From: Eukaryota sp. TZLM1-RC
Lineage: Eukaryota > Protista > Metamonada: BaSk clade
Direction of reading: 5' to 3'
Assembly: GCA_040285825.1 (NCBI GenBank)
Contig: JAUPSS010000010.1
Coordinates: forward strand, 1,052,881-1,116,880
Length of the DNA stretch: 64,000 nucleotides
Shown: piece after piece, positions 1 through 57,899 of the stretch
Layout of the letters: every line of letters begins with the position of its first letter
Numbering within the stretch: position 1 is the stretch's first letter
Notes under the pieces: generated by a model
The model's input: only the letters and a program-made list of their open reading frames with translations
Told to the model about the DNA's origin: nothing
Databases searched by the model: none
Made by a program: the position numbers and the translations under genes

Positions 1-536
1 AGGGAGATGAAGGCCCATTTGTGGTTGTATGTTAGAGTTATTAAGAATAGAATGAATGATATATCTAAAATTGTGAAAATTATCGTAGATGTGAGAGCGT
101 ATTTAAGCTGAGATCGATGATGTACATCTTCTTCCTGAGTATCACTAGACAAAGAGTTTCCCAACTTCTCAAGCCGATCGGTGACAACCCAATGTGCGAT
201 TTTAAGGAAGAGTAGAGCAAAATTTACTGGAATACAGTACTCAAAATCTCCTGCTCCACTGAGAGCAACAATGTAGATAAAGTTGGGGATGATAAGACGT
301 AACCGAAATTTGACTAACTCAGATTCGCTGGAATCGAGCTGGCCAAGAAGAGCACTTTTGAATAGATATATGATAGAGATTGACAATGCAAGTGCCATGT
401 TAATAAGGATGACTTGATTAAATCGGTTATGTACGAGGAGATAAAGAGTGTTGTAGAGATCATGTTCTTTGTAGGCTGAGATCGAAGTGCTCAGAATTGT
501 CGAAACAATGGATCCATAGACATAGAGTTTCAACAT
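1..536 (-). CDS. HRD1: HRD1/synoviolin-like ERAD membrane E3 ligase, N-terminal part (runs off the window)
   Basis: Manual translation from ATG 536, absent from the ORF track: MLKLYVYGSIVSTILSTSISAYKEHDLYNTLYLLVHNRFNQVILIN...LLGQLDSSESELV...FALLFLKIAHWVVTDRLE. Matches the Hrd1 TM-region pattern GxLxxxExE / LLFLKxxHWxxxDR. Confidence 0.7.
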   Translation of the reverse strand, partial: MLKLYVYGSIVSTILSTSISAYKEHDLYNTLYLLVHNRFNQVILINMALALSISIIYLFKSALLGQLDSSESELVKFRLRLIIPNFIYIVALSGAGDFEYCIPVNFALLFLKIAHWVVTDRLEKLGNSLSSDTQEEDVHHRSQLKYALTSTIIFTILDISFILFLITLTYNHKWAFIS

Positions 537-1240
537 TGCGGTTGTAAATCACAATTTGGAAAGGAATTTGGATAAACACTCAAAACAGCTTGACAGAATT
601 TGCCCAATTGAAACACCCCAACATTTAACTCGGTCAGTACAAACCCACAGCACTAACCAATAAGTAATTGATAATATTCATCAGGCTTGATCAAGGAATA
701 AAGTCCCAAAAGTAATACTATGTTTTAACATTTTTCTGATTAAAGTAAAATGCTTGTTTCTATATGCACCAAATTTGAACCAATGACAAAATGACTAATG
801 TCAAAAATTCAAACACGTTGAGAACAATTTCAGAATACAATCTATCGGACACTGTCAATATCCATTTCAGTATCCACTCCCAGTCTATTTGGTTCACTTC
901 ACCCGTGACGTGATCTACCTCTTCATTGAAGCTGAAGATCATGAAAGTCAAAATCATACGTGATGATAGTAAACGTATGTTTTGAGGAGAGAAAATGTGA
1001 AAAACCAATAGAGTTGGAGTCCCATTTTATTCTCTTCAAAAATACTTTATTGTTAACAACTAGTCAACTCAGCTATGCATTGGCATTGAGTTATTCACCA
1101 AAATAGGCGAAATAGTAAAGATTAGAGATGGGCCTTCTCTTCCTTATTTGACCAAGATCCATCAAAAATGACACGTAAGCATGACGAAAAACCCATTAAA
1201 TATTTTGTTTCATCATTCATTATATCATCTTCATCTTGCA

Positions 1241-3283
1241 ATGTCTCACCTAGAATGCGGAATATGCCTTCAGATCATGGAGCAACCGACTACGCTCCCT
1301 TGTGGTCATAGCTTCTGTCGTGATCGATGTCTGTTGCCCTCAAAGAAGCATAACTCCACCTGTCCTCAATGCCGCGAGGAGATTCCATCAATGTCTCACC
1401 GTATCAATATTACTCTGCGAGATATCATTGAATCCTCCTCTCAACACTCTCCCGAACCTCAACTCTGTAAAGGATGCGAAGATGCTCCTGCCACCCTCTT
1501 CTGCTCTGATTGCGATTCTTCTCTTTGCAAGAACTGTTCTGACCATGCACATATTCTCAAGATGTTCCAATCCCATAACATCGTACCCCTCTCCGAACGT
1601 TCCAATGTCTCCTTGCCAAAATGCCCTCACCATAAGGCTAAACAAATCGAGCATTATTGCACCAAGTGCAAGGTTGCTCTATGCGATTCATGTGGCTTGC
1701 TCCAAGGCCACTCACTCCACCATGAAGCTCTTGTTTCTTTTTCACAAGCCAAGGAAGCCTTCACAAAGCAAATTGAAGAGTTTCAGGCCAGAGCTTCTAC
1801 TATTACCCCCTTAGTAGTTCAATCCGGGGATAAAGTAGAATCTGTCGTAAGGGAAACCCTCAATCAATCCCAATCAATTCTTCATGATTTGATTGGTGAT
1901 TTGATTAGACAGTCAGGCACCAAACTTCAGCAGTTGGAATCATCAAATACTGTTGAAGAATCACTTGCTTTTGATGGTGCTGCCAAGGAAAGAGCTCAAG
2001 AAGAGATTCAAAAGATTTATAATGTAGTTGATCAATTTAAAACTACTTTATTTTCTTGTTTTGATAATTTAGAATCTGAAACTATTGGTTTTAAGCTATC
2101 TTTATTAGGTAAATTACTTGGCAAGGAGTTGATTGATGTTGACAAGCTGAATATTTCAAAGACAGCTCAAGAACTTGTCTTTGCTGCCCAAATTGGTCAA
2201 GATTGTGTCCCTTCAAGAGATGAAATTGATGAATTTATTCCTCTTGAAATTGATTTGGAATTAAAACAAATATTAATTATCAATTTTATTAATAATTCAA
2301 AATCAATTAATGTTTCAGATTTTATTTGGCTCTTTAACCTTGAATCTAATTTAGTTTCCCATATTGATTCTCATTTAGTTATTTCTAAATTGGAATTTGG
2401 TAGGTTTTCCAATCAAGAATTTATCAATATTGTTAATTTTGCAATTCAACAATCTAATTCTTTGTTATTAAGCAAGGTTATTGATAATTATTCATTTCAA
2501 TTAGTTCCAGAATTACCAACTATTCCAATTAATTTATTATCAAACATCACTTTAACAAATTCTTTAAATAAAAGAAAAGAAGAATGGTTGGAGAAGGTAA
2601 TTAAAAAGAATTGTTCAAGAGACAATATTGGTGAAATTTCCAGAAATTTATTAGGGAGGGAATTGATGACCAAAATTAGTGTTGGGGTTTGGGCTTACTC
2701 AAATCACATAAACGACCTAACCACCAAGCTTAATAAAGGTTTAACTGAAAATTGGGGGGATTTAGAAGTTGTTATTAATTCATGTGGTAACGACATCAAC
2801 AATTACAAACAACTTGAACCTTTTGATGTGGTGGTGTTGTCTCCTGCCGATGTCCCTTGTCCCGGCCAATACCTAAACCAGCTGTTAGAAGCCGGTAAGG
2901 GTTTGGTATTGTTCAACTGGGGTCCATCATCAAGCCCCCAAGGGTTCAATTACTCTTGCTTTAGTGGGGGTGGTATTTATAACCTTGGATCACAACAAAA
3001 CATTGTTAAAACAAAGTCAAATGACCCAATATTCACAAATGTCAACTCTTTTGCTGTTCCTTATGCTCGTAAAGATGCCCAACTTGTCAATGGAACCTTG
3101 TTGGCAAGTGTGTCTAATGGAAGTCCTTTAATTGCAAAGAATGAAATAGGACAAGGTAGAATTGTGGAGTTTGGTTGTGGTAATTGGAGTAGTGATATTA
3201 ATAGTGGTGATGGCTGGCAAAGCTCAACTGATGGTCACAGGTTGTTTGCCAATTCTATTGCATGGGCTAGTAAAGGGATTTAG
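1241..3283 (+). CDS. TRIM-like protein copy 1: RING + two B-boxes + coiled coil + C-terminal class I glutamine amidotransferase-like (ThuA/DUF4350-type) domain
   Basis: RING CGIC..LPCGHSFC..C..CPQC; B-box1 CKGC..CSDC..LC..C..H..H; B-box2 CPHH..YCTKC..LC..C..H..H. C-terminal FDVVVL / LLEAGKGLVL / PLIAKNEIGQGRIVEFG / LFANSIxW. Start placed at MSHLEC, the first Met common to all four copies. Confidence 0.85.
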   Translation: MSHLECGICLQIMEQPTTLPCGHSFCRDRCLLPSKKHNSTCPQCREEIPSMSHRINITLRDIIESSSQHSPEPQLCKGCEDAPATLFCSDCDSSLCKNCSDHAHILKMFQSHNIVPLSERSNVSLPKCPHHKAKQIEHYCTKCKVALCDSCGLLQGHSLHHEALVSFSQAKEAFTKQIEEFQARASTITPLVVQSGDKVESVVRETLNQSQSILHDLIGDLIRQSGTKLQQLESSNTVEESLAFDGAAKERAQEEIQKIYNVVDQFKTTLFSCFDNLESETIGFKLSLLGKLLGKELIDVDKLNISKTAQELVFAAQIGQDCVPSRDEIDEFIPLEIDLELKQILIINFINNSKSINVSDFIWLFNLESNLVSHIDSHLVISKLEFGRFSNQEFINIVNFAIQQSNSLLLSKVIDNYSFQLVPELPTIPINLLSNITLTNSLNKRKEEWLEKVIKKNCSRDNIGEISRNLLGRELMTKISVGVWAYSNHINDLTTKLNKGLTENWGDLEVVINSCGNDINNYKQLEPFDVVVLSPADVPCPGQYLNQLLEAGKGLVLFNWGPSSSPQGFNYSCFSGGGIYNLGSQQNIVKTKSNDPIFTNVNSFAVPYARKDAQLVNGTLLASVSNGSPLIAKNEIGQGRIVEFGCGNWSSDINSGDGWQSSTDGHRLFANSIAWASKGI

Positions 3284-3291
3284 TTTGTAAA

Positions 3292-6200
3292 TAAATTGGT
3301 TTTTGTGGAGTATTTCAAACATTTTCAATTTCTTTCTTTCCGCTAGCAGGTGATCAGATCTTTGAGTCGATCAGCAAGTCCTCTTTGATTGGGGATGTCA
3401 ATGTATTCAGTGGTCGGCACGATGAGTATTATTTGACTAGGTATCAATAGATGAAAGTGAATGTGGAAACTTTTAACAACTATAAATGTTGCTTAATGAC
3501 GCGTGGTGTTTTTCTTGTAGATACCTTGTGTTAGCACAGAATTTTTGAGTGGTACTGCCCTGCATTGTGTATTTTTAAAATACAAAATTTATTAATTTTA
3601 AAAGCGAAGCAATAAAGACACTCAGAAAGTTGTGGTTAATGTGAAAATGAATTTATTGTCTACTTTAACTCAAGAAGTCAAAGATCCCAATAATCAAGGA
3701 ACCGCAGATAAACTCAAAAACCTACATCCATTTTAAGATCCACTACCAGATCGAAATTAATATGGAAATTATTGGGAATGCCATTCATTGATTACATCAG
3801 AAGGTTTTTTGGCAATCAAAAATTCCACGAGGAAGGTCTGTAAGTCTTTCTGGTTTTTCTTTAGATCATATCAAAGCTGCGGTAATTTCGTTTGAAGATT
3901 GTTTAATATTACAAGCAATTTCTCAATAATTTTATCTGGCCAGCTCAAATACCCTGAAGAATTATGATGTTCGCATTTCACTGCTCTTGTCAAAAATTCA
4001 AAAAAGAATGTTCGTCTAATTGCAGTTTCTGAAGGTTTGAGCAAAATGTTCAGCTTACTCTTTGAATAGATTCAAAGAAAAAGAAAACAAATTTTGTTGC
4101 CGTTCCAACACGGAATCAATACCACTGATGAAATTGCTTCAGCAGTGTTTGCTACAGATGTGTTATTTCATCAAAGTGAATCCAATGTTTGTATGTTGTT
4201 GGATTTTTGTAATGTCTTTAATTCAATTCATCGTTGCAGTATTCATGGTGCTTTGCTCAATTACTTGCCGGAATTGTTGCCATATTTTCGTACATCTTTC
4301 AGCATAAATTCGAATTTGCATTTTGCTGATTCTATTTTGAAATCATCATGGGGTGTTAAGCAAGGAGCCCTGTTGTTTTGTCTGGCCATTCATCCAAGTT
4401 GATCACATATTCAAGCAATGCTTTTTTCCTTAAAAATGATTATTATACGGATGATGTTCTTTTTAAATTGGTTTTTGTGGTGTATTTCAAACATTGTCAA
4501 TATCTTTCTTTCCGCTAGCAGTTGATCAGCAAGTCCTCTTTGATTGGAGATGTCAAGGCATTCAGTGGTCGGCACGATGAGTATTATTTGACTAGGTATC
4601 AATAGATGAAAATGAATGTGGAAACTTTCAACAACTATAATTGTTGCTTAATGACGCGTGGTGTTCTTCTTGTAGTTACCTTGTGTTAACACAGCATTTT
4701 TGTGTGGTGCTGCCCTGCATTTTTTAACTTTTAAAAAAATTATTAATTTCAAAAACGAAGCAATAAAGACACTTAGAAAGTTGTGGTAAATGTGAAAATG
4801 AATATATTGTCTATTTTAAATCCAGGAGTCAAAGATCCCAATAATCAAGACACCGCAGATAAACTCAAAAACCTACATCCATTTGAAGACCCACTGCCAG
4901 ATCGAAATTATTATGGAAATTATTGGGAATGCCATTCATTGATTACATCAGAAGGTTTTTTGGCAATCAAAAATTCCACGAGGAAGGTCTGTAAGTCTTT
5001 CTGGTTTTTCTTTAGATCATATCAAAGCTGCGGTAATTTCGTTTGAAGATTGTTTAATATTACAAGCAATTTCTCAATAATTTTATCTGGCCAGCTCAAA
5101 TACCCTGAAGAATTATGATGTTCGCATTTCACTGCTCTTGTCAAAAATTCAAAAAAGAATGTTCGTCTAATTGCAGTTTCTGAAGGTTTGAGCAAAATGT
5201 TCAGCTTACTCTTTGAATAGATTCAAAGAAAAGGAAATCAAATTTTGTTGCCGTTCCAACACGGAATCAATACCACTGATGAAATTGCTTCAGCAGTGTT
5301 TGCTACAGATGTGTTATTTCATCAAAGTGAATCCAATGTTTGCATGTTGTTGGATTTTTGTAATGTCTTTAATTCAATTCATCGTTGCAGTATTCATGGT
5401 GCTTTACTCAATTACTTGCCGGAATTGTTGCCATATTTTCGTACATCTTTCAGCATAAATTCGAATTTGCATTTTGCTGATTCTATTTTGAAATCATCAT
5501 GGGGTGTTAAGCAAGGAGCTCTGTTGTTTTGTCTGGCCATTCATCCAAGTTGATCACATATTCAAGCAATGCTTTTTTCCTTAAAAATGATTATTATACG
5601 GATGATGTTCTTTTTAAATTGGTTTTTGTGGTGTATTTCAAACATTGTCAATATCTTTCTTTCCGCTAGCAGTTGATCAGCAAGTCCTCTTTGATTGGAG
5701 ATGTCAAGGCATTCAGTGGTCGGCACGATGAGTATTATTTGACTAGGTATCAATAGATGAAAATGAATGTGGAAACTTTCAACAACTATAATTGTTGCTT
5801 AATGACGCGTGGTGTTCTTCTTGTAGTTACCTTGTGTTAACACAGCATTTTTGTGTGGTGCTGCCCTGCATTTTTTAACTTTTAAAAAAATTATTAATTT
5901 CAAAAACGAAGCAATAAAGACACTTAGAAAGTTGTGGTAAATGTGAAAATGAATATATTGTCTATTTTAAATCCAGGAGTCAAAGATCCCAATAATCAAG
6001 ACACCGCAGATAAACTCAAAAACCTACACCCATTTGAAGACCCACTGCCAGATCGAAATTATTATGGAAATTATTGGAAAAGCCATCCATTGGTTGCATC
6101 AGAAGTTGTTTTGGTAATCAAAGATTCCACGTGGAAGGTCTGCAAGTCTTTCTGGTCTTTCTTTAGATCAAATCAAAGCTGCAGTAATTTCGTTAGAAGA

Positions 6201-6632: not shown

Positions 6633-7690
6633 GTTGTCATTAATAAATCTTCCCAATCTGCAAATCTATCAGAAAACTCAAATATTGCATTTCTGCATCC
6701 ACCAATAAAAGCACAAGAAGTAAGAATAGAAGCCTTTGGCCAACCCAAACCGCCATAATGTGGAGTAAGGTAAGCATGATCTGGAATTTGAAACCTTTTA
6801 CATACATTTAAAATTGGAAAATCTTGAATCCAAGCCAAACCGCCATAATGTGAACTAAGATAACCATGGTCTGGAGTTGGGAACATTTAACATCCCCATA
6901 ATTGTGAAAAAACTTTTGCACGTAGCTCATTAAATTTTTGAGCCAAAGGTCTAGTGACGAGAGGATTTGTAGATCGAAATATATGATTAAAATTGGAACT
7001 AAAACACAGTCTTATAATGGTAAATTTGATATGTTTCTGTATATCTAAAGTCATCATTCGGTCAATTTTATCGGAAATTGGGTTCAATTTTTTAAACAAT
7101 TTTTTGGTAATTTCATCATTATTTCCTAAAAACGAACCCAATTGACGATTAGCATCAATTGAATATAATTTGGCTTGAATTTTAATACCATCAACTATTG
7201 TAGAAACTGGACAACTTGAAAGCAAAACACATTTAAGTAAATTAAGTTGAATGCCAATATTGGTAAATAATTCTTTAGAACATACAGTTGCTTCCCTAAA
7301 AATCGTTAAGGAACAACATCATCCGTATAAGAAATCATTTTTAAGGAAGGAAACATTGCTTGAATTTGTAATCAGATTGGATGAATGGCCAGACAAAGCA
7401 TCATGAATACTGCAACGATGAATTGAATACAAGGCGTTACTAAAATCCAACAACATTCAAACATTGGATTCATTTTGATGAAATAATACATCTGTAGCAA
7501 ATATAGTTGAAGAAACTCCATCAGTGATATTAATTCCGTGCTGGAACGGCAACAAAATCGTTTTTGTTTTTCCATTGAACCTGTTTAAGCAACAAGCAGA
7601 AAAAAATATTATGTATGCTTTCAGAGACCGCAATAAGACGAAGATCCAATTTTTGAATTCTTGACAAGTGCAGTCAAACGAGAACTTTAT
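6633..7690 (-). mobile_element. Degraded CRE-like non-LTR remnant, inverted relative to the preceding array (RT core through post-RT region)
   Basis: Reverse complement of the same RT fragment, plus downstream LGSFLG, NHIFRS and HYGGLG motifs; homologous to 50430-50780 and 54748-55095. Confidence 0.75.
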
Positions 7691-7699
7691 AATTTGCGA

Positions 7700-7850
7700 C
7701 TATCAGTAGAAGCAGAAAGTTTTTTTAATGACTTCCAAAAAATGGTTCAACAAAAAACAATGAAAAAATTTGATATTTTTTATGGCGTTCTCGAATTCAA
7801 TTTGCCATTATTAATATATTATCTCGGTTTTTCAATCGAATAAGAAAGCT
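7700..7850 (+). mobile_element. 3' fragment of an RLE non-LTR element (also at ~62900-63040)
   Basis: AESFFNDFQKMVQQKTMKKFDI..WRSRIQFAI parallels AMAFLEDFVVVVKERTGRIFNRVYWQNRIVFSI of the 24-26 kb element; DNA match to 62903-63037. Confidence 0.55.
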
Positions 7851-15070: not shown

Positions 15071-16043
15071 ATATTTTGTTCACTAAAGGCTCTATTCAAA
15101 CCACTTATTTATACCACTAGAATCATTGTCAATTCAGGAGTTCATCCACAGAAACGTCCACATTGGTGAGATAACTGACAACAATATGTGGTGAAATTAA
15201 AATTAAATTTTGCTGATTTTTATTCCTTATTCGATCAAAAATGTGAGTATATGATACATTCTTGGTTATAGTAGTAGAAAACCCTTTGCGTTTGCTTTCA
15301 TAAATGTCCAGTTCTAAACTTGGGACATTGATACATTGTATCTATTGGTCAGCAGAACCAGGCATCTAAACTGCCAGCATTTTTGGTTTTGAAACTTGTC
15401 CCCATTTGTTGCGAAATAATAACTCCATAACTGAAGCTTATTCTTTGAAAAATGGATTTTTGGTGAAATTTTCTTTTCCGTACTACATTCAGTTCCCAAT
15501 TAATAACAAGTTACGGAAAATCTTGAATTGGGTTTAAATTGTAGTAAATAAGCAATACCTTCTGCTAATTCAAAGTAAAATGAGACCAACTTGTGCATTT
15601 ACAAGTGTTATTTCTGACATTGCTGAACTTTTTTTATTGTTATCAAAAATTGGCATAACCTCCTCTTCATTTATTTATTTAATTTGACTCTGAATATTCG
15701 AATTTCCATCGATACAATTTAAAGTTAATAAATAAATAAAAGAATTGTTCTTTCGTCTTTTGACAAGCAGAATAAACAGCTTGTTTGCAAGCTTATCGAA
15801 ATGAACAATGGGTTGGTTGATTAATGTTACAATGATATATTTCAATGACCTATATTGGCTACTGAAAGTGTAAGGTTCAGTTGTTGTTTACAAATCTGTA
15901 AAGGTGGAGTAGGATTTCATCAATGAAGATCATGTCATACTTAAGTGCCATTCATAACATCCGGCTTTCGCTCAAATGCTCATTGATGGTGTAATGCTAA
16001 TATGCCACGTAAGCATGACGAAAAATCTCATCTTCATCTCCCA

Positions 16044-18083
16044 ATGTCTCACTTAGAATGTGGAATATGCCTTCAGATCATGGAGCAACCGACTACGCTA
16101 CCTTGTGGCCATAGCTTCTGTCGTGATCGCTGCCTGTTACCCTCAATGAAGCGTAACTCCACCTGTCCTCAATGCCATGAGGTGATTCCATCGATGTGTC
16201 ATCGTATTAACATCACTCTGCGTGATATTATTGAATCCTTCTCTCAACATTCTCCCGAACCTCAACTCTGCAAAGGATGTGAAGATGCTCCTGCCACCCT
16301 CTTCTGCTCTGATTGCGATTATTCTCTTTGTAACCAATGCTCTGATAAAGCCCACAGTCTCAAGATGTTCCAATCCCACAACATCGTACCCCTCTCCGAA
16401 CGCTCAAATGTCTCCCTACCAAAATGCCCTCACCATAAGGGCAAGCAAATCGAGCATTATTGCACCAAGTGCAAGGTTGCTCTATGCGATTCATGTGGCT
16501 TGCTCCAAGGCCACTCACTCCACCATGAAGCTCTTGTTTCTTTTTCACAAGCCAAGGAAGCCTTCACAAAGCAAATTGAAGAGTTTCAAGCCAAGGCTTC
16601 CACTATTACCCCCTTAGTAGTTCAATCCGCGGATAAAGTAGAATCTGTCGTAAGGGAAACCCTCAATCAATCCCAATCACTTCTTCATGATTTGATTGGT
16701 GATTTGATTAGACAGTCAGGCACCAAACTTCAGCAGTTGGAATCATCAAATACTGTTGAAGAATCACTTGCTTTTGATGGTGCTGCCAAGGAAAGAGCTC
16801 AAGAAGAGATTCAAAAGATTTATAATGTAGTTGATGAATTTAAAACTACTTTATTTTGTTGTTTTGATAATTTGGAATCTGAAACTATTGGTTTTAAGCT
16901 ATCTTTATTAGGTAAATTACTTGGCAAGGAGTTGATTGATGTTGACAAGTTGAATATTTCAAAAAGAGCTCAAGAACTTGTTTTTGCTGCCCAAATTAGT
17001 CAAGACTGTGTCCCTTCAAGAGATGAAATTGATGAATTAATTCCTCTTGAAATTGACTTGGAATTAAAACAAAAATTAATTATCAATTTTATTAATAATT
17101 CAAAATCAATTAATTTTTCAGATTTCATTTGGCTCTTTAACCTTGAATCAAATTTAGTTTCTAATATTGATTTTGATTTAGTTATTTCTAAATTGGAATT
17201 TGGTAGGTTATCCAATCAAGAATTTATCAATATTGTTAATTTTGCAATTCAACAATCTAATTTGTTATTAAGCAAGGTTATTGATAATTATTCATTTGAA
17301 TTGGTTCCAGAATTACCAGCTATTCCAATTAATTTATTATTAAATATTACTTTAACAAATTCTTTAAATAAAAGAAAAGAAGAATGGTTGGAGAAGGTAA
17401 TTAAAAAGAATTGTTCAAGGGACAATATTGGTGAAATTTCCAGAAGTTTATTAGGAAGGGAATTGATGTCCACAAAAATTAGTGTTGGGGTTTGGGTTCA
17501 TTCAGATCACATGAACGACATAACCACCAAGCTTAATAAAGGTTTAACTGAAAATTGGGGGGATTTAGAAGTTGTTATTAATTCAAGTGGTAACGCCATC
17601 AACAATTACAACGAACTTGAACCCTTTGATGTGGTGGTGTTGGATCCTCACCATGTCTCTTGTCCCGGCCAATACCTAAACCAGCTGTTAGAAGCTGGTA
17701 AGGGTTTGGTATTGTTCAACTTTAATCCACAAAAAAGCCCCCAAGGGTTTAATTACTCTTGCTTTAGTGGGGGTAATTATACTAACCTTTATTCACAACA
17801 AAACATTGTTAAAACAAACTCAAATGACCCAGTATTCACAAAAGTCAACTCTTTTGTTGTTCCTCATGCTCGTAAAGATGCCCAACTTGTCAATGGAACC
17901 TTGTTGGCAAGTGTGTCTAATGGAAGTCCTTTGATTGCAAAGAATGAAATAGGACAAGGTAGAATTGTGGAGTTTGGATGTGTTTATTGGAGTAGTGATA
18001 TTGGTGGTCATGGCTGGCAAAGCTCAACTGATGGTCACAGGTTGTTTGCCAATTCTATTGTATGGGCTTGTAAAGGGATTTAG
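16044..18083 (+). CDS. TRIM-like protein copy 2 (no linked RT remnant)
   Basis: Same architecture as copy 1. Similarity ends at TAAATTGGTTTTTGTGG (~18108). Confidence 0.85.
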   Translation: MSHLECGICLQIMEQPTTLPCGHSFCRDRCLLPSMKRNSTCPQCHEVIPSMCHRINITLRDIIESFSQHSPEPQLCKGCEDAPATLFCSDCDYSLCNQCSDKAHSLKMFQSHNIVPLSERSNVSLPKCPHHKGKQIEHYCTKCKVALCDSCGLLQGHSLHHEALVSFSQAKEAFTKQIEEFQAKASTITPLVVQSADKVESVVRETLNQSQSLLHDLIGDLIRQSGTKLQQLESSNTVEESLAFDGAAKERAQEEIQKIYNVVDEFKTTLFCCFDNLESETIGFKLSLLGKLLGKELIDVDKLNISKRAQELVFAAQISQDCVPSRDEIDELIPLEIDLELKQKLIINFINNSKSINFSDFIWLFNLESNLVSNIDFDLVISKLEFGRLSNQEFINIVNFAIQQSNLLLSKVIDNYSFELVPELPAIPINLLLNITLTNSLNKRKEEWLEKVIKKNCSRDNIGEISRSLLGRELMSTKISVGVWVHSDHMNDITTKLNKGLTENWGDLEVVINSSGNAINNYNELEPFDVVVLDPHHVSCPGQYLNQLLEAGKGLVLFNFNPQKSPQGFNYSCFSGGNYTNLYSQQNIVKTNSNDPVFTKVNSFVVPHARKDAQLVNGTLLASVSNGSPLIAKNEIGQGRIVEFGCVYWSSDIGGHGWQSSTDGHRLFANSIVWACKGI

Positions 18084-19165: not shown

Positions 19166-22081
19166 ATGCCTTTTACACATATTGGAACCTTTACCCACAA
19201 GTTTGAGGTTTCTAAATATGTTCATAACGCCACTAGATGCTCAGTAGTTAATGTCAATCTACCAAACAGTCCTCTCTCACACATGTCTGTAACGTTTCCT
19301 ACTGTGCCCAACTCAGACAGTGGTATTCCTCATTGTCTTGAACATCTTGTTTTTCTTGGATCGGAGCATTTCAAGCATAAAGGAACATTAGATAAAATTG
19401 CCACTCTTTCACTCTCCGATGGCACTAATGCTCATACCTTCATCGATCAGACAGTCTATTCTTGTGTATGTGCTGGTAATGAGGGGATTCTGCAACTCCT
19501 CCCTGTTTACATCGATCACCTATTCCGCCCAACCATAACCCATGAGAAAATGCTTACTGAGATCCATCACATTGACGGTGCAGGGAAAGACGGAGGTGTG
19601 GTTTACTGTGAAGTTAGCTCAGATCATTATTCATCTGAAAATCTTACATTTATGACATTATTAAAAGAATTGTATAAAGATAATAATTTCAAATACAATT
19701 ACGGTGGTGATCCTCACGAATTGGAGACTTTGACTTTGGAAGACGTCCTGAGATTTCACAAGAACTTTTACAGACCTCAGAAGTGTATGATTTTAACTAT
19801 TGGTAATATTGATTCAGAAAGTCTTTTGAATTCAATTGACGAATATTTCACAGGAATTGAGTCAATTGCAGATTCATCGTTGACTGCTGATGTCGAGTTG
19901 CCAACCCCCACAGTCAGTCAAACCGTAATCAAAAACGTTTACTTTCCTTCTGATGATGAGGACATTGGAACGGTTTTGTTGGGTTTTCTGTACACAAATG
20001 TCAATAATCATCTCGATTTGATTGCAATCAATGTGTTGATTGATTATCTCTCAGAGGGGTCAAGCTCTCCTTTTGTCAAATATTTGGTTGAATCTGAAGA
20101 TTCTTATTGTTCATCAGTTTTGATTGAGTCAATTGAAGTCAAGGATGTATCGCTCATAATTTCATGTGACGACGTTGACTACGAGAAAATTGAGGAAATA
20201 GGGGAGGTGATTGATGGTTTGATTGATGATTTGATTGGCAGTGGGTTAGATTGGGAACGTTTACACAGTCTGATTGAACGTAATCATCGACAATCACTTT
20301 TTGATCTTGATTGTAACCCTCTGTCGACTATTTCTGAGCTTGTGGTCAGGGACTTTCTCAATTCTGACACGTTCCCAGTCAACAACGACTCTTTACGTAA
20401 CGTTATCAGTCAGAAATATCTGGAATTATTTAAGTTAAACAAAGATTATTGGATAGATTTATTGAGGGTTTTCAAGAGACCTCGGGTTGAAGTTAGAGGT
20501 TACCCGTCTATCCAGAAAGGGAAAGAGGTAGAGAATCAATCAAAAATGATTGTGCAGAAACGTGTGCATCAACTAGGAGAGCAAGGGCTCAAAGTGTGTG
20601 AAGAAAAGCTCATAAAGGCCCAGAAAAGTCAAGCAAAGTCTCCTGATCCTAAAATATTTGAGAACTTCTCTGTTCCTCACCCTTCATCAATTGAATTCAT
20701 TAATGTTTCAATGCAAAATCTGGCTAATTTTTACATTTCCACTATTAATTCAAGTAATTTCAATACTATTCGGTTATTATTCGATTTGAGCACCTTTTCA
20801 AGCCTCGAACTATCATTATTTCCACTGCTAACCAATTGTTTTTTCCGTCAGAATGTTGTTGACTCGGCCGGAAATATTTTGAATTCAGAAGACTTGAACG
20901 ATTTGTTTGAAAAACTTTCTGTGGCATTTTGGGCTGGTCTCGGTGTTTCTTGTGGTCACACGTCATCAGTCTCTGGAAATCCATTGACCAATCTATTTGA
21001 GCTAGGATTTGTGGCCGATGTTCAAAATGTACCTAAGGTTTTGAGTTTATTCAAAAGTCTCCTCCAAAACGGAACTCTTACATCATTGATTGTCGATAAC
21101 GTAAAGAAGGTCATAAAGAGTCAAATCAATAGCTCAAAAAGAGATGGTGGATCGTTGTTACCAAAAATTGTGGATTATTACATTTTTAATAATTCTATTT
21201 TGAATGATACATCAATTTTTAAAACTTTCAAAATTTTATCAATGTTCGACAAGGAAGAGCTCACTGACAAGCTCAATCAGCTAATAAAGAAGCTGTTTTT
21301 TGAACGATCAAAAATTTTAAGAATCGGTGTTTCTGGTCTTGGTACTTCGACAGAGTCAATTACTGATCTCTTTTCTATTAGTAAAGAACCGCTACCAGAA
21401 CTACCGAAAATTTCCAATTGTCTGGTTAATTTCACCCAATTACCAACTTATAATATTATTAAATCACCCGTTATTAATTCTAATTTTGTGTCAATGGTTA
21501 TTAAAGGTCCTACTTCATTTAATTTTCCAAATAAAGCCGCTCTTATTGTCGCTTTAGAATACCTTAACCAACTAGAGGGACCCCTTTACACTCAAATCAG
21601 GGGACTTGGGATTAGCTATCATTTTGATTTGAGTCTGGATTCGGAGCTTGGTGTAATAAAATTCGAACTTTATGACTGTGGTGATGCTTTAAAGGGAATT
21701 TCCAAGTTTAAAGAAGTCTTGAGGAATTTTGTGGAAGGTCAAAATGGTGACGTTTTTGATCCTATTCAGTTCAAAGCAGCAATAGCTTCGTCTATTTATA
21801 GCATAACTTCTTCAGAATCGTCTGTGAGTTTGGCAGGTTTTAAATCGACTGTTATGCAATTAAAGGGTTATAGTCTTGATTGGTCAAGGAGTTTGATCGA
21901 TGAGATTAGGGATATGAGTAAGGATTTGGTATTGTATGCCTTCAAACAATTTCTTGGACCTTTTCTTGAAGATTCTTGCAGAATTTTCATTGTCACTTCA
22001 ACCACAGATGCAGAAAAAATTACTGCAGGTCTTCAGGATCAGAGTCTTGATGAGCAATATGTTTCTGATCTATTTAAGTAG
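19166..22081 (+). CDS. M16C (PreP/insulinase-like) zinc metallopeptidase
   Basis: Inverted zinc motif GIPHCLEHLVFLGS (HxxEH); TNAHT..DQTVY; GVVYCE; FHKNFYRP; EGPLYTQIRGLG. 971 aa. Confidence 0.85.
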   Translation: MPFTHIGTFTHKFEVSKYVHNATRCSVVNVNLPNSPLSHMSVTFPTVPNSDSGIPHCLEHLVFLGSEHFKHKGTLDKIATLSLSDGTNAHTFIDQTVYSCVCAGNEGILQLLPVYIDHLFRPTITHEKMLTEIHHIDGAGKDGGVVYCEVSSDHYSSENLTFMTLLKELYKDNNFKYNYGGDPHELETLTLEDVLRFHKNFYRPQKCMILTIGNIDSESLLNSIDEYFTGIESIADSSLTADVELPTPTVSQTVIKNVYFPSDDEDIGTVLLGFLYTNVNNHLDLIAINVLIDYLSEGSSSPFVKYLVESEDSYCSSVLIESIEVKDVSLIISCDDVDYEKIEEIGEVIDGLIDDLIGSGLDWERLHSLIERNHRQSLFDLDCNPLSTISELVVRDFLNSDTFPVNNDSLRNVISQKYLELFKLNKDYWIDLLRVFKRPRVEVRGYPSIQKGKEVENQSKMIVQKRVHQLGEQGLKVCEEKLIKAQKSQAKSPDPKIFENFSVPHPSSIEFINVSMQNLANFYISTINSSNFNTIRLLFDLSTFSSLELSLFPLLTNCFFRQNVVDSAGNILNSEDLNDLFEKLSVAFWAGLGVSCGHTSSVSGNPLTNLFELGFVADVQNVPKVLSLFKSLLQNGTLTSLIVDNVKKVIKSQINSSKRDGGSLLPKIVDYYIFNNSILNDTSIFKTFKILSMFDKEELTDKLNQLIKKLFFERSKILRIGVSGLGTSTESITDLFSISKEPLPELPKISNCLVNFTQLPTYNIIKSPVINSNFVSMVIKGPTSFNFPNKAALIVALEYLNQLEGPLYTQIRGLGISYHFDLSLDSELGVIKFELYDCGDALKGISKFKEVLRNFVEGQNGDVFDPIQFKAAIASSIYSITSSESSVSLAGFKSTVMQLKGYSLDWSRSLIDEIRDMSKDLVLYAFKQFLGPFLEDSCRIFIVTSTTDAEKITAGLQDQSLDEQYVSDLFK

Positions 22082-28883: not shown

Positions 28884-29750
28884 ATGTCTGCTCCGAATCT
28901 TGATCTTTCAGACCTGATCATCAGTAATCTTTCATCAAAACCAACCGTTAAACCTAAGCCATGCCCTCCAAACCTTCCAACGAAATATGTTCCTCCTGAA
29001 GTCACTGATCCTTCTGAAACACCCTCTAAAGATGAACATTTATCAGACTTTATTCCTGAACCAGAACAACCACCACTTCCACAACCGAAACCACACCGCC
29101 AAGATCCTATCCCAGAACCTCACAGTCCACAGCCCGTTGAACCCACTATAACCACTGAACAATCCATTTCTCCACTCCCAGAAGAAGAAGAAGTTCCACC
29201 CCCTAAGAAGGAGCACAAATCACTTAGACACATTTTTGACGTGTCCCGTGACGTGGAATCTGCAGTTCCCTACCATTTGGATGGAGATCCTTCCATGGAG
29301 AAGCCTGTGAATAGAAGGAAAAGATTAGCGCTCAGAACTAACAGTGAGGTGTTGTCTGCCATTCATTCTTTCAAAAAGGTTTTTAAGTTTAATGATGACA
29401 ACTCTATAGATAGGAATGAATACTCGAGAATCCATGCAAGAATTTGTCAATCTCTATACCCAAGTGTAACAAACGCCATGATTAGAAAATTATGCGAAGA
29501 TGATTGGAAACGTGATTCTAAGGGTCGTGATTGCTTGACCAGTGAAGACCTGGACGATGTTTTGTTTCAATTGGTAGATCACTGGACAATGACAGTCGAT
29601 AGTTCGGAATATATCGAATTTTTAAAAATTTTGACGGAGCGCGTGCGATTTGAGGGCAGTAATAACATCAATGCTTATAGTGAGGTACTACCTGAATACA
29701 AACCAAAAAGTGTCAAGAAAGAAAAAAGTAAGAAAAAGAGGAAAAAGTAG
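28884..29750 (+). CDS. Pro-rich protein with EF-hand-like region and basic C-terminal tail
   Basis: 288 aa; EF-like loops NDDNSIDRNEY and DSKGRDCLTSEDL; KKEKSKKKRKK tail. Confidence 0.7.
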   Translation: MSAPNLDLSDLIISNLSSKPTVKPKPCPPNLPTKYVPPEVTDPSETPSKDEHLSDFIPEPEQPPLPQPKPHRQDPIPEPHSPQPVEPTITTEQSISPLPEEEEVPPPKKEHKSLRHIFDVSRDVESAVPYHLDGDPSMEKPVNRRKRLALRTNSEVLSAIHSFKKVFKFNDDNSIDRNEYSRIHARICQSLYPSVTNAMIRKLCEDDWKRDSKGRDCLTSEDLDDVLFQLVDHWTMTVDSSEYIEFLKILTERVRFEGSNNINAYSEVLPEYKPKSVKKEKSKKKRKK

Positions 29751-29984
29751 TGAACAGTAGTGCAATTGTATTATATTTTTTTGATTCAATAAATGCCTTT
29801 ATTTATTGGTTATTATTGAGCTTTTTATTACTTAAATATTATATCAATGGAAAGTGATCATTGAATTAAGGATAAGTATTTTGAAATTATTTGAAGCAAG
29901 ATCTATTTTTTTCTCCAACGGGTCACATGTTGAAATAATAAATACGTTATCATTTAGGCCTGAAAATCTTGATTAAAACTAAGT
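29643..29984 (+). repeat. Left copy of ~345-bp direct repeat flanking the LanM cassette (3' end plus 3' flank of the EF-hand gene)
   Basis: Aligns with 34084-34429; 11 differences in the first 108 nt by manual count. Confidence 0.85.
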
Positions 29985-33151: not shown

Positions 33152-33391
33152 ATGATTTCAGTGCCCTTCTCTGACCTCGAACTTGAGTTGTCCCGCATTC
33201 TGTTGCGCCGTCGTTCGTTGTTGCGTCCTTGTACTCAAACAGGTGGTGTATGTGCCTCAGGTCATGTCTCATGCGGTCATTGCCCAAGCTCGAAAAAAGG
33301 TTGTAAAAGAATTCCCTCCGAGGATGGTTTCTCTATCACTGATGACCATTCTGTAAATCAACTTGTCCAAGCTCTAGGGCACCCCTTCTAG
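33152..33391 (+). CDS. Candidate lanthipeptide precursor (LanA-like), 79 aa
   Basis: MISVPFSDLELELSRILL-RRR-SLLRPCTQTGGVCASGHVSCGHCPSSKKGC-KR-IPSEDGFSITDDHSVNQLVQALGHPF. All 5 Cys and 7 Ser/Thr lie in residues 22-51; divergent from lanM. Confidence 0.6.
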   Translation: MISVPFSDLELELSRILLRRRSLLRPCTQTGGVCASGHVSCGHCPSSKKGCKRIPSEDGFSITDDHSVNQLVQALGHPF

Positions 33392-34083
33392 GTTGTGTTG
33401 TTGCTCATGTATAAAGTCATTTCTTCAAAGTCTGTTTTATTGTCTTTCAACAACACGTTGAACGACATACATTCACTTTTATATTCAGTTGTCTTGGACG
33501 ATTCTTCAACATACCGTTGATGTACTGTCTCCGTTTACAGTAATTTTGCAAAATTGAAACAGCTTTTCTGAAAGAACAAGCATGATTTCAGATTTGCAAC
33601 TCATACGAATGGATTAAGCATACTCAGTGTACTTCCCTTCCCTTGTGTTGTTTCTACTGCAATCATCAGACAGACTTAACGACTTTATAGAAACGCTGGA
33701 TGTGTCAACTATGGGTCTACTGTATAATATTAGGACACACGTCTCTTGTAAGTCCGACATGTGTCTCAAGCTTCTCTTTATAATCTATTGATTGAAGATA
33801 AGCTATAGCTGTTGTTTGTAAATCAGATTCTTTGGAGGTTCTATTGTTGCTTATTAATTTCTAGTCCTCATCAGCTGACTGACAGTCATGTCCTCAGTTA
33901 GTCACAGGTAACTACAAAAGCAAACGCCAGAATCTTCAAAAAGCTTTTAGAAGAATCAAATATGACCTAGACCTTACCATTCGACAGTTCTGTCATCACA
34001 TGTTTTCTGCACTTTGTATCAAACGTATGCATGAAAATAACAATCCATTTACAAAGAAGAATAAGATAATTTATAATAAGCAT

Positions 34084-34429
34084 GTGCGATTTCACGGCAG
34101 TAATAACATCAATGCTTACAGTAAGGTACTTCCTGAATACAAACCAAAAAGTGCCAAGAAAGAAAAAAGCAGGAAACAGAGGAAAAAGTGAAAAATCAGT
34201 GCAATTGTATTATATTTTTTTGATTCAATAAATTTCTTTATTTATTGGTTATTAATGAGCTTTTTTTTACCAAATATTGTATCAATGGAAAGTGATCATT
34301 GAATTCGGGGTAACTATTTTGAAATTATTTGAAGCAAGATCTGTTTTCAAATTTTATCTCCAATGGGTCACATATTGGAATAATAAATACGTTATTATTT
34401 AGACCTGAAAATCATGATTAAAAATAAGT
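34084..34429 (+). repeat. Right copy of the direct repeat (non-functional duplicate of the EF-hand gene 3' end)
   Basis: Encodes VRFHGSNNINAYSKVLPEYKPKSAKKEK versus VRFEGSNNINAYSEVLPEYKPKSVKKEK in the intact gene. Confidence 0.85.
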
Positions 34430-35628: not shown

Positions 35629-37668
35629 CTAAATCCCTTTACTAGCCCATACAATAGAATTGGCAAACAACCTATGACCATCAGTTGAGCTTTGCCAACC
35701 AGAACTTCCAATATCACTACTCCAATAAACACATCCAAACTCCACAATTCTACCTTGTCCTATTTCATTCTTTGCAATTAAAGAACTTCCATTAGACACA
35801 CTTGCCAACAAGGTTCCATTGACAAGTTGGGCATCTTTACGAGCCTCACGAACAACAAAAGAGTTGACATTTGTGAATATTGGGTCATTTGACTTTGTTT
35901 TAACCATGTTTTGTTGTGATCCAAATTCAGTCCAAGTACCCCCACTAAAGCAAGAGTAATTAAACCCTTGGGGGCTTCTTTGTGGATACCAGTTGAACAA
36001 TACCAAACCTTTACCAGCTTCTATCAGCTGGTTTAGGTATTGGCCTGGACAAGAGACATGGTAAGGAGACACCACCACCACATCAAAGGGTTCAAGTTCG
36101 TTGTAATTGTTGAAGGCGTTACTACTTGAATTAATAACAACTTCTAAATCTCCCCAATTTTCAGTTAAACCTTTATTAAGAAAGGTGGTTAGATAGTTAA
36201 TGTGACCTGAAAAAACCCAAACCCCAACACTAATTTTGGTCATCAATTCCCTTCCTAATAAATTTCTGGAAATTTCACCAACATTGTCCCTTGAACAATT
36301 CTTTTTAATAACCTTCTCCAACCATTCTTCTTTTCTTTTATTTAAAGAATTTGTTAAAGTAATGTTTGATAATAAATTACTTGGAATAGTTGGTAATTCT
36401 GGAACTAATTCAAATGAATAATTATCAATAACCTTGCTTAATAACAAAGAATTAGAATGTTGAAGTGCAAAATTAACAACATTAATAAATTCTTGATTGG
36501 AAAACCTACCAAATTCCAATTTAGGAATTACTAAATCAGAATCAATATTAGAAACTAAATGAGATTCAAGGTTAAAGAGCCAAATAAAATCTGAAACATT
36601 AATTGATTTTGAATTATTGATAAAATTAATAATTAATTTTTGTTTTAATTCCAAGTCAATTTCAAGAGGAATTAATTCATCAATTTCATCTCTTGAAGGG
36701 ACACAATCTTGACCAATTTGGGCAGCAAAGACAAGTTCTTGAGCTCTTTTTGAAATATTCAGCTTGTCAACATCAATCAACTCCTTGCCAAGTAATTTAC
36801 CTAATAAAGATAGCTTAAAACCAATAGTTTCAGATTCTAAATTATCAAAACAAATAAAAAAAGTAGTTTTAAATTCATTAACTACATTATAAATCTTTTG
36901 AATCTCTTCTTGAGCTCTTTCCTTGGCAGCACCATCAACAGCAAGGGATTCTTCGACAGTATTTGAGGACTCTAACTGGTGAAGTTTGGTGCCTGACTGT
37001 CTAATCAAATCACCAATCAAATCATGAAGAATTGATTGGGATTGATTGAGGGTTTCCCTTACGACAGATTCGACTTTATCCCCTGATTGAGCTACCAAGG
37101 GAATAATAGTGGAAGTATTGGCTTGAAACTCTTCAATTTGCTTTGTGAAGGCTTCCTTGGCTTGAGAAAAGGAAACGAGAGCTTCGTGGTGAAGTGAGTG
37201 GCCTTGGAGCAAGCCACATGAATCGCATAGAGCAACCTTGCACTTGGTGCAATAATGCTCGATTTGCTTACCCTTATGGTGAAGGCATTTTGGTAGGGAG
37301 ACATTTGAGCGTTCGGAGAGGGGTACGATGTTGTGGGATTGGAACATCTTAACAGAATGGACATGGTCAGAACAGTTCTTGCAAAGAGAAGCATCACAGT
37401 CAGAGCAGAAGAGGGTGGCAGGAGCATCTTCGCATCCTTTGCAGAGTTGAGGTTCGGGAGAGTGTTGAGAGGAGGAATCGATGATGTCGCGTAGAGTGAT
37501 GTTAATACGGTGACACATCGATGGAATCTCCTCGCGGCATTGAGGACAGGTGGAGTTATGCTTCTTTGAGGGCAACAGACATCGATCACGACAGAAGCTA
37601 TGACCACAAGGGAGCGTAGTTGGTTGTTCCATGATCTGAAGGCATATTCCGCATTCTAGGTGAGACAT
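35629..37668 (-). CDS. TRIM-like protein copy 3
   Basis: Same architecture; intact ORF from MSHLEC. Confidence 0.85.
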   Translation of the reverse strand: MSHLECGICLQIMEQPTTLPCGHSFCRDRCLLPSKKHNSTCPQCREEIPSMCHRINITLRDIIDSSSQHSPEPQLCKGCEDAPATLFCSDCDASLCKNCSDHVHSVKMFQSHNIVPLSERSNVSLPKCLHHKGKQIEHYCTKCKVALCDSCGLLQGHSLHHEALVSFSQAKEAFTKQIEEFQANTSTIIPLVAQSGDKVESVVRETLNQSQSILHDLIGDLIRQSGTKLHQLESSNTVEESLAVDGAAKERAQEEIQKIYNVVNEFKTTFFICFDNLESETIGFKLSLLGKLLGKELIDVDKLNISKRAQELVFAAQIGQDCVPSRDEIDELIPLEIDLELKQKLIINFINNSKSINVSDFIWLFNLESHLVSNIDSDLVIPKLEFGRFSNQEFINVVNFALQHSNSLLLSKVIDNYSFELVPELPTIPSNLLSNITLTNSLNKRKEEWLEKVIKKNCSRDNVGEISRNLLGRELMTKISVGVWVFSGHINYLTTFLNKGLTENWGDLEVVINSSSNAFNNYNELEPFDVVVVSPYHVSCPGQYLNQLIEAGKGLVLFNWYPQRSPQGFNYSCFSGGTWTEFGSQQNMVKTKSNDPIFTNVNSFVVREARKDAQLVNGTLLASVSNGSSLIAKNEIGQGRIVEFGCVYWSSDIGSSGWQSSTDGHRLFANSIVWASKGI

Positions 37669-37774
37669 TGGGAGATGAAGATGAGATAATGAATGATGAA
37701 ACAAAATATTTCAAGGTTTTGTTGTTATGCTTACGTGTCCAAAGAAATTCCATTTTCTGCAATTCTTAATATTT

Positions 37775-55461: not shown

Positions 55462-57501
55462 CTAAGTCCCTTTACTAGCCCATACAATAGAATTGGCAAA
55501 CAACCTGTGACCATCAGTTGAGCTTTGCCAGCCAGCACTATTAATATCACTACTCCATTCATTACATCCAAACTCCACAATTCTACCTTGTCCTATTTCA
55601 TTCTTTGCAATTAAAGGACTTCCATTAGACACACTTGCCAACAAGGTTCCATTGACAAGTTGGGCATCTTTACGAGCATAAGGAACAGCAAATGAGTTGA
55701 CATTTGTGAATATTGGGTCATTTGACTTTGTTTTAACAATGTTTTGTTGTGATCCAAGGTCAGCCCATTTACCCCCACTAAAGCAAGAGTAATTAAACCC
55801 TTGGGGGCTTTTTGGTGGATAATTGTTGAACAATACCAAACCTTTACCAGCTTCTAACAGCTTGTTTAGGTATTGGCCGGGACAAGATAATAATCGAGGA
55901 CACAAAACCACCACATCAAAGGGTTCAAGTTCGTTGTAATTGTTGATGTCGTTACCACTTGAATTAATAACAACTTCTAAATCCCCCCAATTTTCAGTTA
56001 AACCTTGATTAAGCTTGGTGGGTAGTTCGATAATGAAGCCTGAATCACCCCAAACCCCAACACTAATTTTGGACATCAATTCCCTTCCTAATAAATTTCT
56101 GGAAATTTCACCAATATTGTCCCTTGAACAATTCTTTTTGATAACCTTCTCCAACCATTCTTCTTTTCTTTTATTTAAAGAATTTGTTAAAGTGATATTT
56201 GATAATAAATTACTTGGAATAGTTGGTAATTCTGGAACTAATTCAAATGAATAATTATCAATAACCTTGCCTAATAACAAAGAATTAGAATGTTGAATTG
56301 CAAAATTAAAAACATTGAAAAATTCATGATTGGAAAACCCACCAAATTCCAATTTAGCAATAACTAAATCAAAATCAATATTGGAAACTAAATTAGATTC
56401 AAGGTTAAAGAGCCAAATAAAATCTGAAACATTAATTGATTTTGAATTTTTGACAAAATTGATAATTAATTTTTGTTTTAATTCCGAGTCAATTTCAAGA
56501 GGAATTAATTCATCAATTTCATCTCTTGAAGGGACACAATCTTGACCAATTTGGGCAGCAAAGACAAGTTCTTGAGCTCTTTTTGAAATATTCAGCTTGT
56601 CAACATCAATCAACTGCTTGCCAAGTAATTTAGCTAATAAAGATAGTTTAAAACCAATAGTTTCAGATTCTAAATTATCAAAACAAGTAAATAAACTAGT
56701 TTTAAATTCATCAACTACATTAAAAATCTTTTGAATCTCTTCTTCAGCTCTTTCCTTGGCAGCACCATCAAAAGCAAGTGATTCTTCGACAGTATTTGAG
56801 GATTCCAACTGTTGAAGTTTGGTGCCTGACTGTCTAATCAAATCACCAATCAAATCATGAAGAATTGATTGGGATTGATTGAGGGTTTCCCTTACGACAG
56901 ATTCTACTTTATCCGCGGATTGAACTACCAAGGGGGTAATAGTGGAAGTATTGGCTTGAAACTCTTCAATTTGCTTTGTGAAGGCTTCCTTGGCTTGCGA
57001 AAAAGAAACGAGAGCTTCGTGGTGAAGTGAGTGGCCTTGTAGCAAACCACATGAATCACAGAGAGCAACCTTGCACTTGGTGCAATAATGCTCGATTTGC
57101 TTACCCTTATGGTGAGGGCATTTTGGTAGGGAGACCTTTGAGCGTTCGGAGAGGGGTACGACGTTGTGGGATTGGAATGCTTTCATTGCGTGAACACCAG
57201 CAGAGCATTTCTCACAGAAAGAGAGATCACAGTTAGAGCAGAAGAGGGTGGCAGGAGCTTCTTCGCATCCTTTACAGTGTTGAGGTTCGGGAGAGTGTTG
57301 AGTGGAGGATTCAATGATGTCGCGCAGAGTGATGTTAATACGGTGGCACATGGAAGGAATCTCCTCGCGACACTGAGGACAGGTTGAGTTGTGCTTCTTC
57401 GAGGGCAACAGACATCGATCACGACAGAAGCTATGACCACAAGGGAGCGTGGTTGGTTGCTCCATGATCTGAAGGCATATTCCGCATTCTAGGTGAGACA
57501 T
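55462..57501 (-). CDS. TRIM-like protein copy 4
   Basis: Same architecture; intact ORF from MSHLEC. Confidence 0.85.
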   Translation of the reverse strand: MSHLECGICLQIMEQPTTLPCGHSFCRDRCLLPSKKHNSTCPQCREEIPSMCHRINITLRDIIESSTQHSPEPQHCKGCEEAPATLFCSNCDLSFCEKCSAGVHAMKAFQSHNVVPLSERSKVSLPKCPHHKGKQIEHYCTKCKVALCDSCGLLQGHSLHHEALVSFSQAKEAFTKQIEEFQANTSTITPLVVQSADKVESVVRETLNQSQSILHDLIGDLIRQSGTKLQQLESSNTVEESLAFDGAAKERAEEEIQKIFNVVDEFKTSLFTCFDNLESETIGFKLSLLAKLLGKQLIDVDKLNISKRAQELVFAAQIGQDCVPSRDEIDELIPLEIDSELKQKLIINFVKNSKSINVSDFIWLFNLESNLVSNIDFDLVIAKLEFGGFSNHEFFNVFNFAIQHSNSLLLGKVIDNYSFELVPELPTIPSNLLSNITLTNSLNKRKEEWLEKVIKKNCSRDNIGEISRNLLGRELMSKISVGVWGDSGFIIELPTKLNQGLTENWGDLEVVINSSGNDINNYNELEPFDVVVLCPRLLSCPGQYLNKLLEAGKGLVLFNNYPPKSPQGFNYSCFSGGKWADLGSQQNIVKTKSNDPIFTNVNSFAVPYARKDAQLVNGTLLASVSNGSPLIAKNEIGQGRIVEFGCNEWSSDINSAGWQSSTDGHRLFANSIVWASKGT

Positions 57502-57899
57502 TGGGAAATGAAGATGAGATAATGAATGGTGAAACAAAATATTTGAAGGGTTTTTCGTCATGCTTACGTGTCATTGATGATGGTTCTCTGGTTTTTGCAA
57601 TGCATTCAACAGGTGAAATGAGAACACAAGATGAAAGAATCTTCTTTTATTCAAACCACAGATTATTGTGTACAGATACTGAACAACCTTAGCTTTCCAA
57701 AATCTACATTGTTTTTATATATTTTTATTTATTCCAACAAAAACAAACTATACGACAAGGTTAAAATTCTATGTCTTCATAACCCAAATCAGCCAAGAAC
57801 AATTGACTGGAAGTTTTTCCTGGACTGGAAATCTTTATTCCCTTGTAATAAATTGCATTTAAGGTATACTCAATGTCTAACCCCCACAGATCTTCAAAA

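Follow-up and report, generated by a model that had tools for sequence, protein, structure and literature searches.

A candidate class II lanthipeptide precursor gene with an internal core and an acidic C-terminal tail, head-to-head with a lanM gene in a protist genome

Class II lanthipeptides have been described as products of bacteria, with precursors of the leader-core type (PMC11264318, PMC7268733), and the LanC-like enzymes of eukaryotes have been described as LanCL proteins that add glutathione (PMC9934072). For class III and class IV lanthipeptides, it is established that the cleaving proteases can be encoded away from the cluster: unlinked M1, S9, and M16 proteases process the precursors, and AplP cuts after the motif E-(I/L)-(L/Q) (PMC10885120). 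In an engineered graspetide, a leader that had been moved behind the core still worked (PMC13003496). A literature search of incomplete coverage returned no report of a native eukaryotic LanM system or of a natural lanthipeptide follower.

The window analysed here was a stretch of 64,000 nt from contig JAUPSS010000010.1 (1.38 Mb; assembly GCA_040285825.1) of the protist Eukaryota sp. TZLM1-RC, the genome of which has a GC content of about 35%. Eukaryotic genes (TRIM-like RING/B-box, syndetin, and WD40) surrounded a cassette in which a lanM gene and an ORF of 79 aa lay head-to-head, with their starts 54 nt apart (Table 1). A sequence-only reading had taken this ORF for a lanthipeptide precursor with a leader, a core bounded by dibasic sites, and a follower. 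According to the present analysis, the ORF probably encodes the substrate of this LanM, and the two genes would form a class II lanthipeptide system that resides in the protist genome; this assignment rests on the intact LanM, the head-to-head linkage, and a three-part peptide anatomy that was repeated across the LanM clade.

TABLE 1. Coordinates of the lanM cassette, of the candidate precursor and its parts in the window, and of the related small ORFs at other loci.
Feature	Position	Strand or orientation	Evidence or remark
Direct repeat copy 1, about 360 nt	29627..29984	+	3' end and downstream flank of host gene 28884-29750
LanM, class II lanthipeptide synthetase, full-length, 925 aa	30320..33097	-	Profile, fold, and residue evidence
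Spacer, 54 nt, AT-rich, between both start codons	33098..33151	.	Probable bidirectional promoter
Candidate class II lanthipeptide precursor (LanA-like), 79 aa: N-flank, core, acidic tail	33152..33391	+	Translation, codon score, anatomy
N-flank (leader), residues 1-26, ending in Pro26	33152..33229	+	Predicted helix 7-22, low confidence
LELE box, residues 6-15	33167..33196	+	Candidate LanM-binding element; matrix and box matches
RRR, residues 19-21	33206..33214	+	Found in no relative
Core, Cys27-Cys51: 5 Cys, 6 Ser/Thr, net +2	33230..33304	+	Begins CxxT; holds GG 31-32 and KK 48-49
KR, residues 52-53	33305..33310	+	R53 is last-Cys+2; candidate follower cleavage point
Cys-free acidic tail (follower), residues 54-79 and stop	33311..33391	+	Predicted helix 65-74, low confidence
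Direct repeat copy 2	34068..34429	+	87-95% identity
L003 small ORF	548-772	Divergent from lanM	
L006 small ORF	7474-7710	Divergent from lanM	
L008 small ORF	1675-1953	Divergent from lanM	
L004, two paralogous small ORFs		Upstream of lanM, same strand	

Profile analysis of the window LanM gave 319.8 bits with TIGR03897 (cut-off 304) and Pfam matches to DUF4135 and LANC_like, and scores with LanKC and LanL were far below their cut-offs. The best fold matches were LicM2 and CylM. In CylM, the catalytic residues (D252, H254, K274, D347, H349, N352, D364, R506, and T512), the zinc ligands, and the acid His have been described (PMC4550811), and they were mapped onto the window enzyme by motif and spacing. 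All ten catalytic residues of the dehydratase domain, the cyclase His, and the Cys/Cys-Cys zinc site were present; D167, H169, K193, D279, H281, N284, D296, E298, R427, T433, H753, C811, C853, and C854 were invariant in the clade. With full DUF4135 and LANC_like domains and all catalytic residues, the enzyme resembled those of bacterial class II systems of the CylM, LicM2, and ProcM type. It also shared with the eukaryotic LanCL proteins a LanC-like zinc cyclase fold in a eukaryote; however, LanCL proteins have no dehydratase domain and add glutathione intermolecularly (PMC9934072), whereas the window enzyme is a complete LanM and has a peptide gene linked to it.

A full HMMER scan returned four stand-out relatives of the window LanM. 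In two trees the enzyme fell within a clade of nine sequences (SH-aLRT 100, long stem), the sister group of which was unsure because the trees were made by a quick method and had long branches. The clade LanMs shared only 22-28% identity with the window enzyme and came from metagenomes, at least two of them on clearly eukaryotic DNA. One clade lanM was found on a contig of 1.24 Mb that also carried genes for RasGEF, RCC1, C2, and metacaspase proteins. The lanM of locus L008 contained a 91-nt GT-AG phase-0 intron (3459-3549), which indicates residence in a eukaryotic genome; the exons of this gene were handled separately and never joined for searches, and further 5' exons are likely. The L004 contig, with long homopolymer tracts and a Hint-like gene, was eukaryote-like. 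No clade member was found in two scans of GTDB, which were pattern-based and hence limited, and scans of metagenomes and viruses returned only LanMs outside the clade, besides L008 again.

Further features were seen at individual lanM loci. In both the L006 and the L007 assembly, the lanM N-terminus was divided between two frames (L006 7843-8004 and 8001-10607), by a small intron or a frameshift. In L093, the clade LanM (59-4630, P0060) ended in a fused serine hydrolase domain of the beta-lactamase family (PF00144), which may be an in-built peptidase for processing; this contig held just 58 nt upstream of lanM, and no precursor was visible there. The stretch 1-8766 of L004 was cluster-like, with a beta-lactamase-family gene, a membrane GT2 glycosyltransferase, a Cupin_8/JmjC oxygenase, two precursor paralogues, and lanM; this gene set suggests a tailored (glycosylated or hydroxylated) product. 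Just downstream of the clade lanM at the P0005 locus (JGI 3300059473), two tandem called genes of 43 aa (3779-3910 and 3982-4113) could be precursors of another layout. Outside the clade, P0074, a LanM of 1687 aa with an N-terminal S9 prolyl-oligopeptidase domain, represented another LanM-peptidase fusion.

Translation of the 79-aa ORF agreed with the layout that the sequence-only reading had described: residues 1-26 held no Cys, and RRR (19-21), Cys at 27, 34, 41, 44, and 51, GG (31-32), KR (52-53), and a 26-aa Cys-free tail were all in place, with 28 aa after the last Cys. The tail had also been called acidic; its Cys-free length was confirmed, and the acidity was mild only (net -2 including KR). 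The reading had seen no evident signal peptide, and the N-terminus, as read from the sequence, was indeed acidic and amphipathic with no hydrophobic stretch. It had missed an extra dibasic pair, the KK inside the core. The placement of a Ser/Thr 4-5 residues before each Cys, which had been offered as lanthionine-ring geometry, held for all five Cys of this peptide (post hoc P=0.004 when residues 22-51 were shuffled; post hoc P=0.04 when any adjacent offset pair was permitted) and failed as a family rule, since the relatives described below showed it for between 1/5 and 3/4 of their Cys.

The frame of the 79-aa ORF had the top host-like codon score among the six frames (0.098 per codon, against 0.05-0.16 for host genes), and the source collection likewise lists the ORF as a called gene. 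The peptide had no match in Pfam, NCBIfam, or Atlas, its best PDB match (E 0.5) was at chance level, and its AlphaFold model was uninformative (pLDDT 50, no confident fold). Two other assignments of the site were rejected. Neither an upstream lanM exon nor a precursor on the opposite strand fitted, since the other frames were stop-riddled and lower-scoring and the LanM N-terminus aligned with its relatives from about residue 10.

A direct repeat of the 3' end of a host gene flanked the 4.4-kb lanM cassette on both sides, and a multi-copy retroelement-like fragment began at about 34450, past the second repeat copy. The repeats and the fragment point to a local duplication or insertion event at the cassette. 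A sigma-70 promoter scan gave results at chance level. Public DNA runs matched short lanM stretches at 100%, and the ORF was outside the matched part. Four similar RING/B-box/DUF7408 (TRIM-like) genes were present in the 64 kb (1181-3283, 16002-18083, 35629-37704, and 55462-57561). A gene for a PreP/falcilysin-like M16 peptidase (19166-22081) was located 8 kb from lanM; this linkage may be due to chance, and the peptidase was not seen at other clade loci. Skoliomonad M16 enzymes have been reported as probably cytosolic.

Five small ORFs of the same build were found at four other clade loci (Table 1), so that the linked, precursor-like ORF proposed for the window recurred beside homologous lanM genes of this clade. 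All six peptides had an N-flank of 26-35 aa, a cluster of 15-25 aa with 4-6 Cys, 4-6 Ser/Thr, and a net charge of +1 to +2, and a Cys-free acidic tail of 19-37 aa with a net charge of -2 to -5. A rule based on this anatomy matched just these six ORFs, and the window ORF was its sole match in the 64-kb window; bacterial lanM loci, 0.8 Mb in all, gave 0 matches, and Markov nulls gave 0-2 per Mb. The rule was loose and was set after the peptides had been seen, and both it and the anchored tests given below were post hoc and covered five independent loci. L025 and L045, which carry a human-gut metagenome label and were bacterial lanM loci by match, were left out of the analyses. On the short contigs L002, L009, and L093, no ORF of the same build was found. 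At L002, a divergent open frame running off the contig end (1-165, minus strand) had two Cys, an Arg at last-Cys+2, and a VSFQE stretch like that of the L006 tail; it is a possible degenerate or partial precursor, and the profile searches gave it no support.

The peptides of L006 and L008 could be aligned with E=1e-9, and leave-one-out profiles ranked the candidate first at each of the four other loci. The window peptide was not recovered by the profile of the other five (rank 239/1006). By sequence it is an outlier of the family, and what links it to the others is where it lies, its anatomy, and a pair of anchored residues. Between the two L004 paralogues, nonsynonymous codons were counted at 1/14 in the N box, 3/16 in the tail, 7/14 in the junction, and 5/15 in the core. 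Flanks that are kept while junction and core vary are the usual signature of precursor families. From its recurrence beside four other clade LanMs and this pattern at L004, the leader-core-follower layout looks like a family trait.

The failure of the family profile, together with a homologue search of 5.8 billion proteins that returned only the peptide itself, would also suit a chance or decayed frame in a recently inserted, silent cassette, as would the duplicated host sequence that brackets the cassette and the retroelement debris adjoining it. We regard this explanation as very unlikely: the codon score was host-like, the anatomy had the low null rate given above, the head-to-head position was the same as in three other loci, and lanM was intact with a host-like GC3 of 0.34.

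Two residues were shared at fixed positions. Thr was found at first-Cys+3, giving a CxxT core start, at 4/5 independent loci (P=0.003), and Lys or Arg was found at last-Cys+2 at 4/5 independent loci (P=1.5e-4). Pro occurred 1-8 residues ahead of the first Cys in 6/6 peptides, as a descriptive count. The N-flank box, which is LELE in the window peptide, was weakly shared (P=0.026; window peptide versus the other four, P=0.053), and the tails shared no motif beyond composition (P about 0.7). A matrix of the bacterial class II leader helix matched the N-flank of the window peptide (P 0.0015-0.01) and not those of its relatives; among the tails, it matched only that of L008 (P 0.001-0.004). A relocated ELSxxEL leader helix in the tail is a tentative reading, with the matrix significant for L008 only and no motif common to the tails.

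The Cys-rich core could also be read in another way, with the small proteins as zinc- or disulfide-binding partners or regulators of LanM (similar to a metallothionein or a RING fragment) and not as its substrates. The window core contains a CxxGHxxCxxC stretch, which we take to be reminiscent of RING fingers, the L006 core is CxC-rich, and LanM itself needs zinc. However, Cys spacing and His content varied at every locus, so that there was no fixed Cys/His spacing of the kind expected of a zinc finger or metallothionein; no zinc-finger family of Pfam or NCBIfam was matched, and the model showed no confident fold. Every core had 4-6 Ser/Thr along with its 4-6 Cys, and no other substrate candidate was present nearby. 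A partner or regulator role was accordingly rated as quite unlikely, and the substrate reading was kept.

How the core might be released was considered from the boundaries of the six peptides. The sequence-only reading had set aside the internal GG as a cleavage site, and this was borne out: the GG lies inside the conserved core start, and a GG or GA directly before the first Cys was found in 0 relatives. QTGG/QTGA as a conserved double-glycine site was rejected, as other relatives have CxxT at that place. The proposed excision of residues 22-51 by a Kex2- or furin-like dibasic protease, as in fungal KEX2-processed peptides, did not hold up. RRR and KR flank the core of the window peptide (post hoc P=0.0015 in a naive shuffle), and a lineage-specific dibasic signal is conceivable; however, a dibasic pair was present in 0/5 relatives, there was no signal peptide, the core was single, the window core itself contains KK, and LanM, which needs ATP, would act in the cytosol. 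This mode of processing is therefore highly unlikely. Of the features that might have been conserved at clade loci, the ORF layout recurred, and the dibasic sites and the Ser/Thr spacing did not. The KR is best taken as an example of the family-wide single basic residue at last-Cys+2, and RRR is seemingly lineage-specific or incidental. With these two readings, the question of how the peptide would reach a Kex2-like protease disappears.

No C39/ABC (LanT) gene was found among the scanned or called genes at the loci examined. A dedicated protease was absent from the window locus, and none was linked at all clade loci. These results raise an alternative in which the LanM-modified peptide keeps its tail, and perhaps its leader, as a small thioether-stapled protein with a functional or targeting acidic helix. 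It would agree with the lack of a dedicated protease at the window locus, with the conservation of the tail between the L004 paralogues, and with the lack of an evident signal peptide or exporter. On the other hand, the basic residue fixed at last-Cys+2 looks like a boundary, and the fusion of a clade LanM to a beta-lactamase-family serine hydrolase, together with such a gene near the L004 lanM, hints at dedicated processing. Retention of the tail was considered unlikely, and a removable follower is preferred.

In the substrate reading, both genes would be transcribed from the shared 54-nt spacer. A cytosolic LanM would bind the peptide, most likely by way of the helix in the N-flank that carries the LELE-type box, phosphorylate and dehydrate Ser/Thr of the core with ATP, and close thioether rings with zinc; as a ring candidate across the family, C27-T30 is better than S22-C27. 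Since there is neither a LanT nor a GG site, general cytosolic host proteases would take off both flanks. The follower may be cut near the single basic residue two positions past the last Cys, and the leader may be cut within the junction that precedes the first Cys and contains Pro, or else at its own box and then trimmed. Until its release, the acidic follower would probably neutralise the mildly cationic core or aid binding. The likely use of the product, judged from the roles of bacterial lanthipeptides, would be chemical defence or prey handling.

Comparison with known systems showed that the candidate precursor shares with bacterial class II precursors a small linked gene for a Cys/Ser/Thr-rich peptide, and a variable core with conserved flanks; the N-flank box of the window peptide may be a further likeness, to the leader helix. 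Unlike the bacterial systems, it occurs in a eukaryotic host, the leader has no GG or GA end, no LanT/C39 transporter was found among the called genes, and the two genes are head-to-head and not in an operon. The protist core is internal and is followed by an acidic tail of 19-37 aa, whereas the bacterial LanA candidates of the fetched loci (n=29) had a median of 3 aa after the last Cys, with a long and acidic tail in 0/29. From these sequence features, the system is class II-like in its enzyme, and its precursor departs from that class in two customary features, the C-terminal core and the GG site with LanT, of which the latter is not found in every bacterial system.

Cyanobactins and amatoxins are RiPPs with follower peptides. 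As in follower RiPPs such as bottromycin (PMC10885120), the core of the protist peptides precedes a C-terminal segment that looks removable, but the chemistry and enzymes are different. The lack of a dedicated linked protease recalls class III/IV systems, in which AplP (M1), FlaP (S9), and PttP (M16) are unlinked; the N-flank box resembles the AplP cutting motif E-(I/L)-(L/Q) (PMC10885120), and Pro is placed near the leader end as in these classes. Unlike class III/IV, the enzyme is a LanM and not a LanKC or LanL, and a follower is present. With fungal KEX2-processed repeat proteins and dikaritins, the system has in common a eukaryotic host and, in the window peptide alone, basic pairs that flank the core. 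It differs from them in having no signal peptide and no repeated cores, in the absence of dibasic sites from all relatives, and in the presence of a LanM in place of a fungal oxidative cyclase.

A broader interpretation, for which the comparative data leave a little less than an even chance, is that several unrelated protists have domesticated one LanM clade and make lanthipeptides from an undescribed precursor type, with an internal core and an obligatory acidic C-terminal follower that may be part of enzyme recognition, and with host cytosolic peptidases, or fused ones of the serine-hydrolase type, doing the processing. The possible role of the follower in recognition is suggested by the match of the L008 tail to the bacterial leader helix. 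Precursors of this layout would escape mining rules built around a C-terminal core. As a small unit of two genes, the system lends itself directly to a co-expression test, and peptide display would profit from an enzyme whose natural substrates carry an internal core ahead of a C-terminal extension. If the interpretation is true, no earlier native lanthipeptide pathway of a eukaryote and no earlier natural lanthipeptide follower are on record, as far as the literature found shows. Such a protist system would reveal how lanthipeptides can be made when both a GG site and LanT are missing, and a LanM clade of protists that has a precursor type of its own would bring eukaryotes into lanthipeptide biosynthesis.
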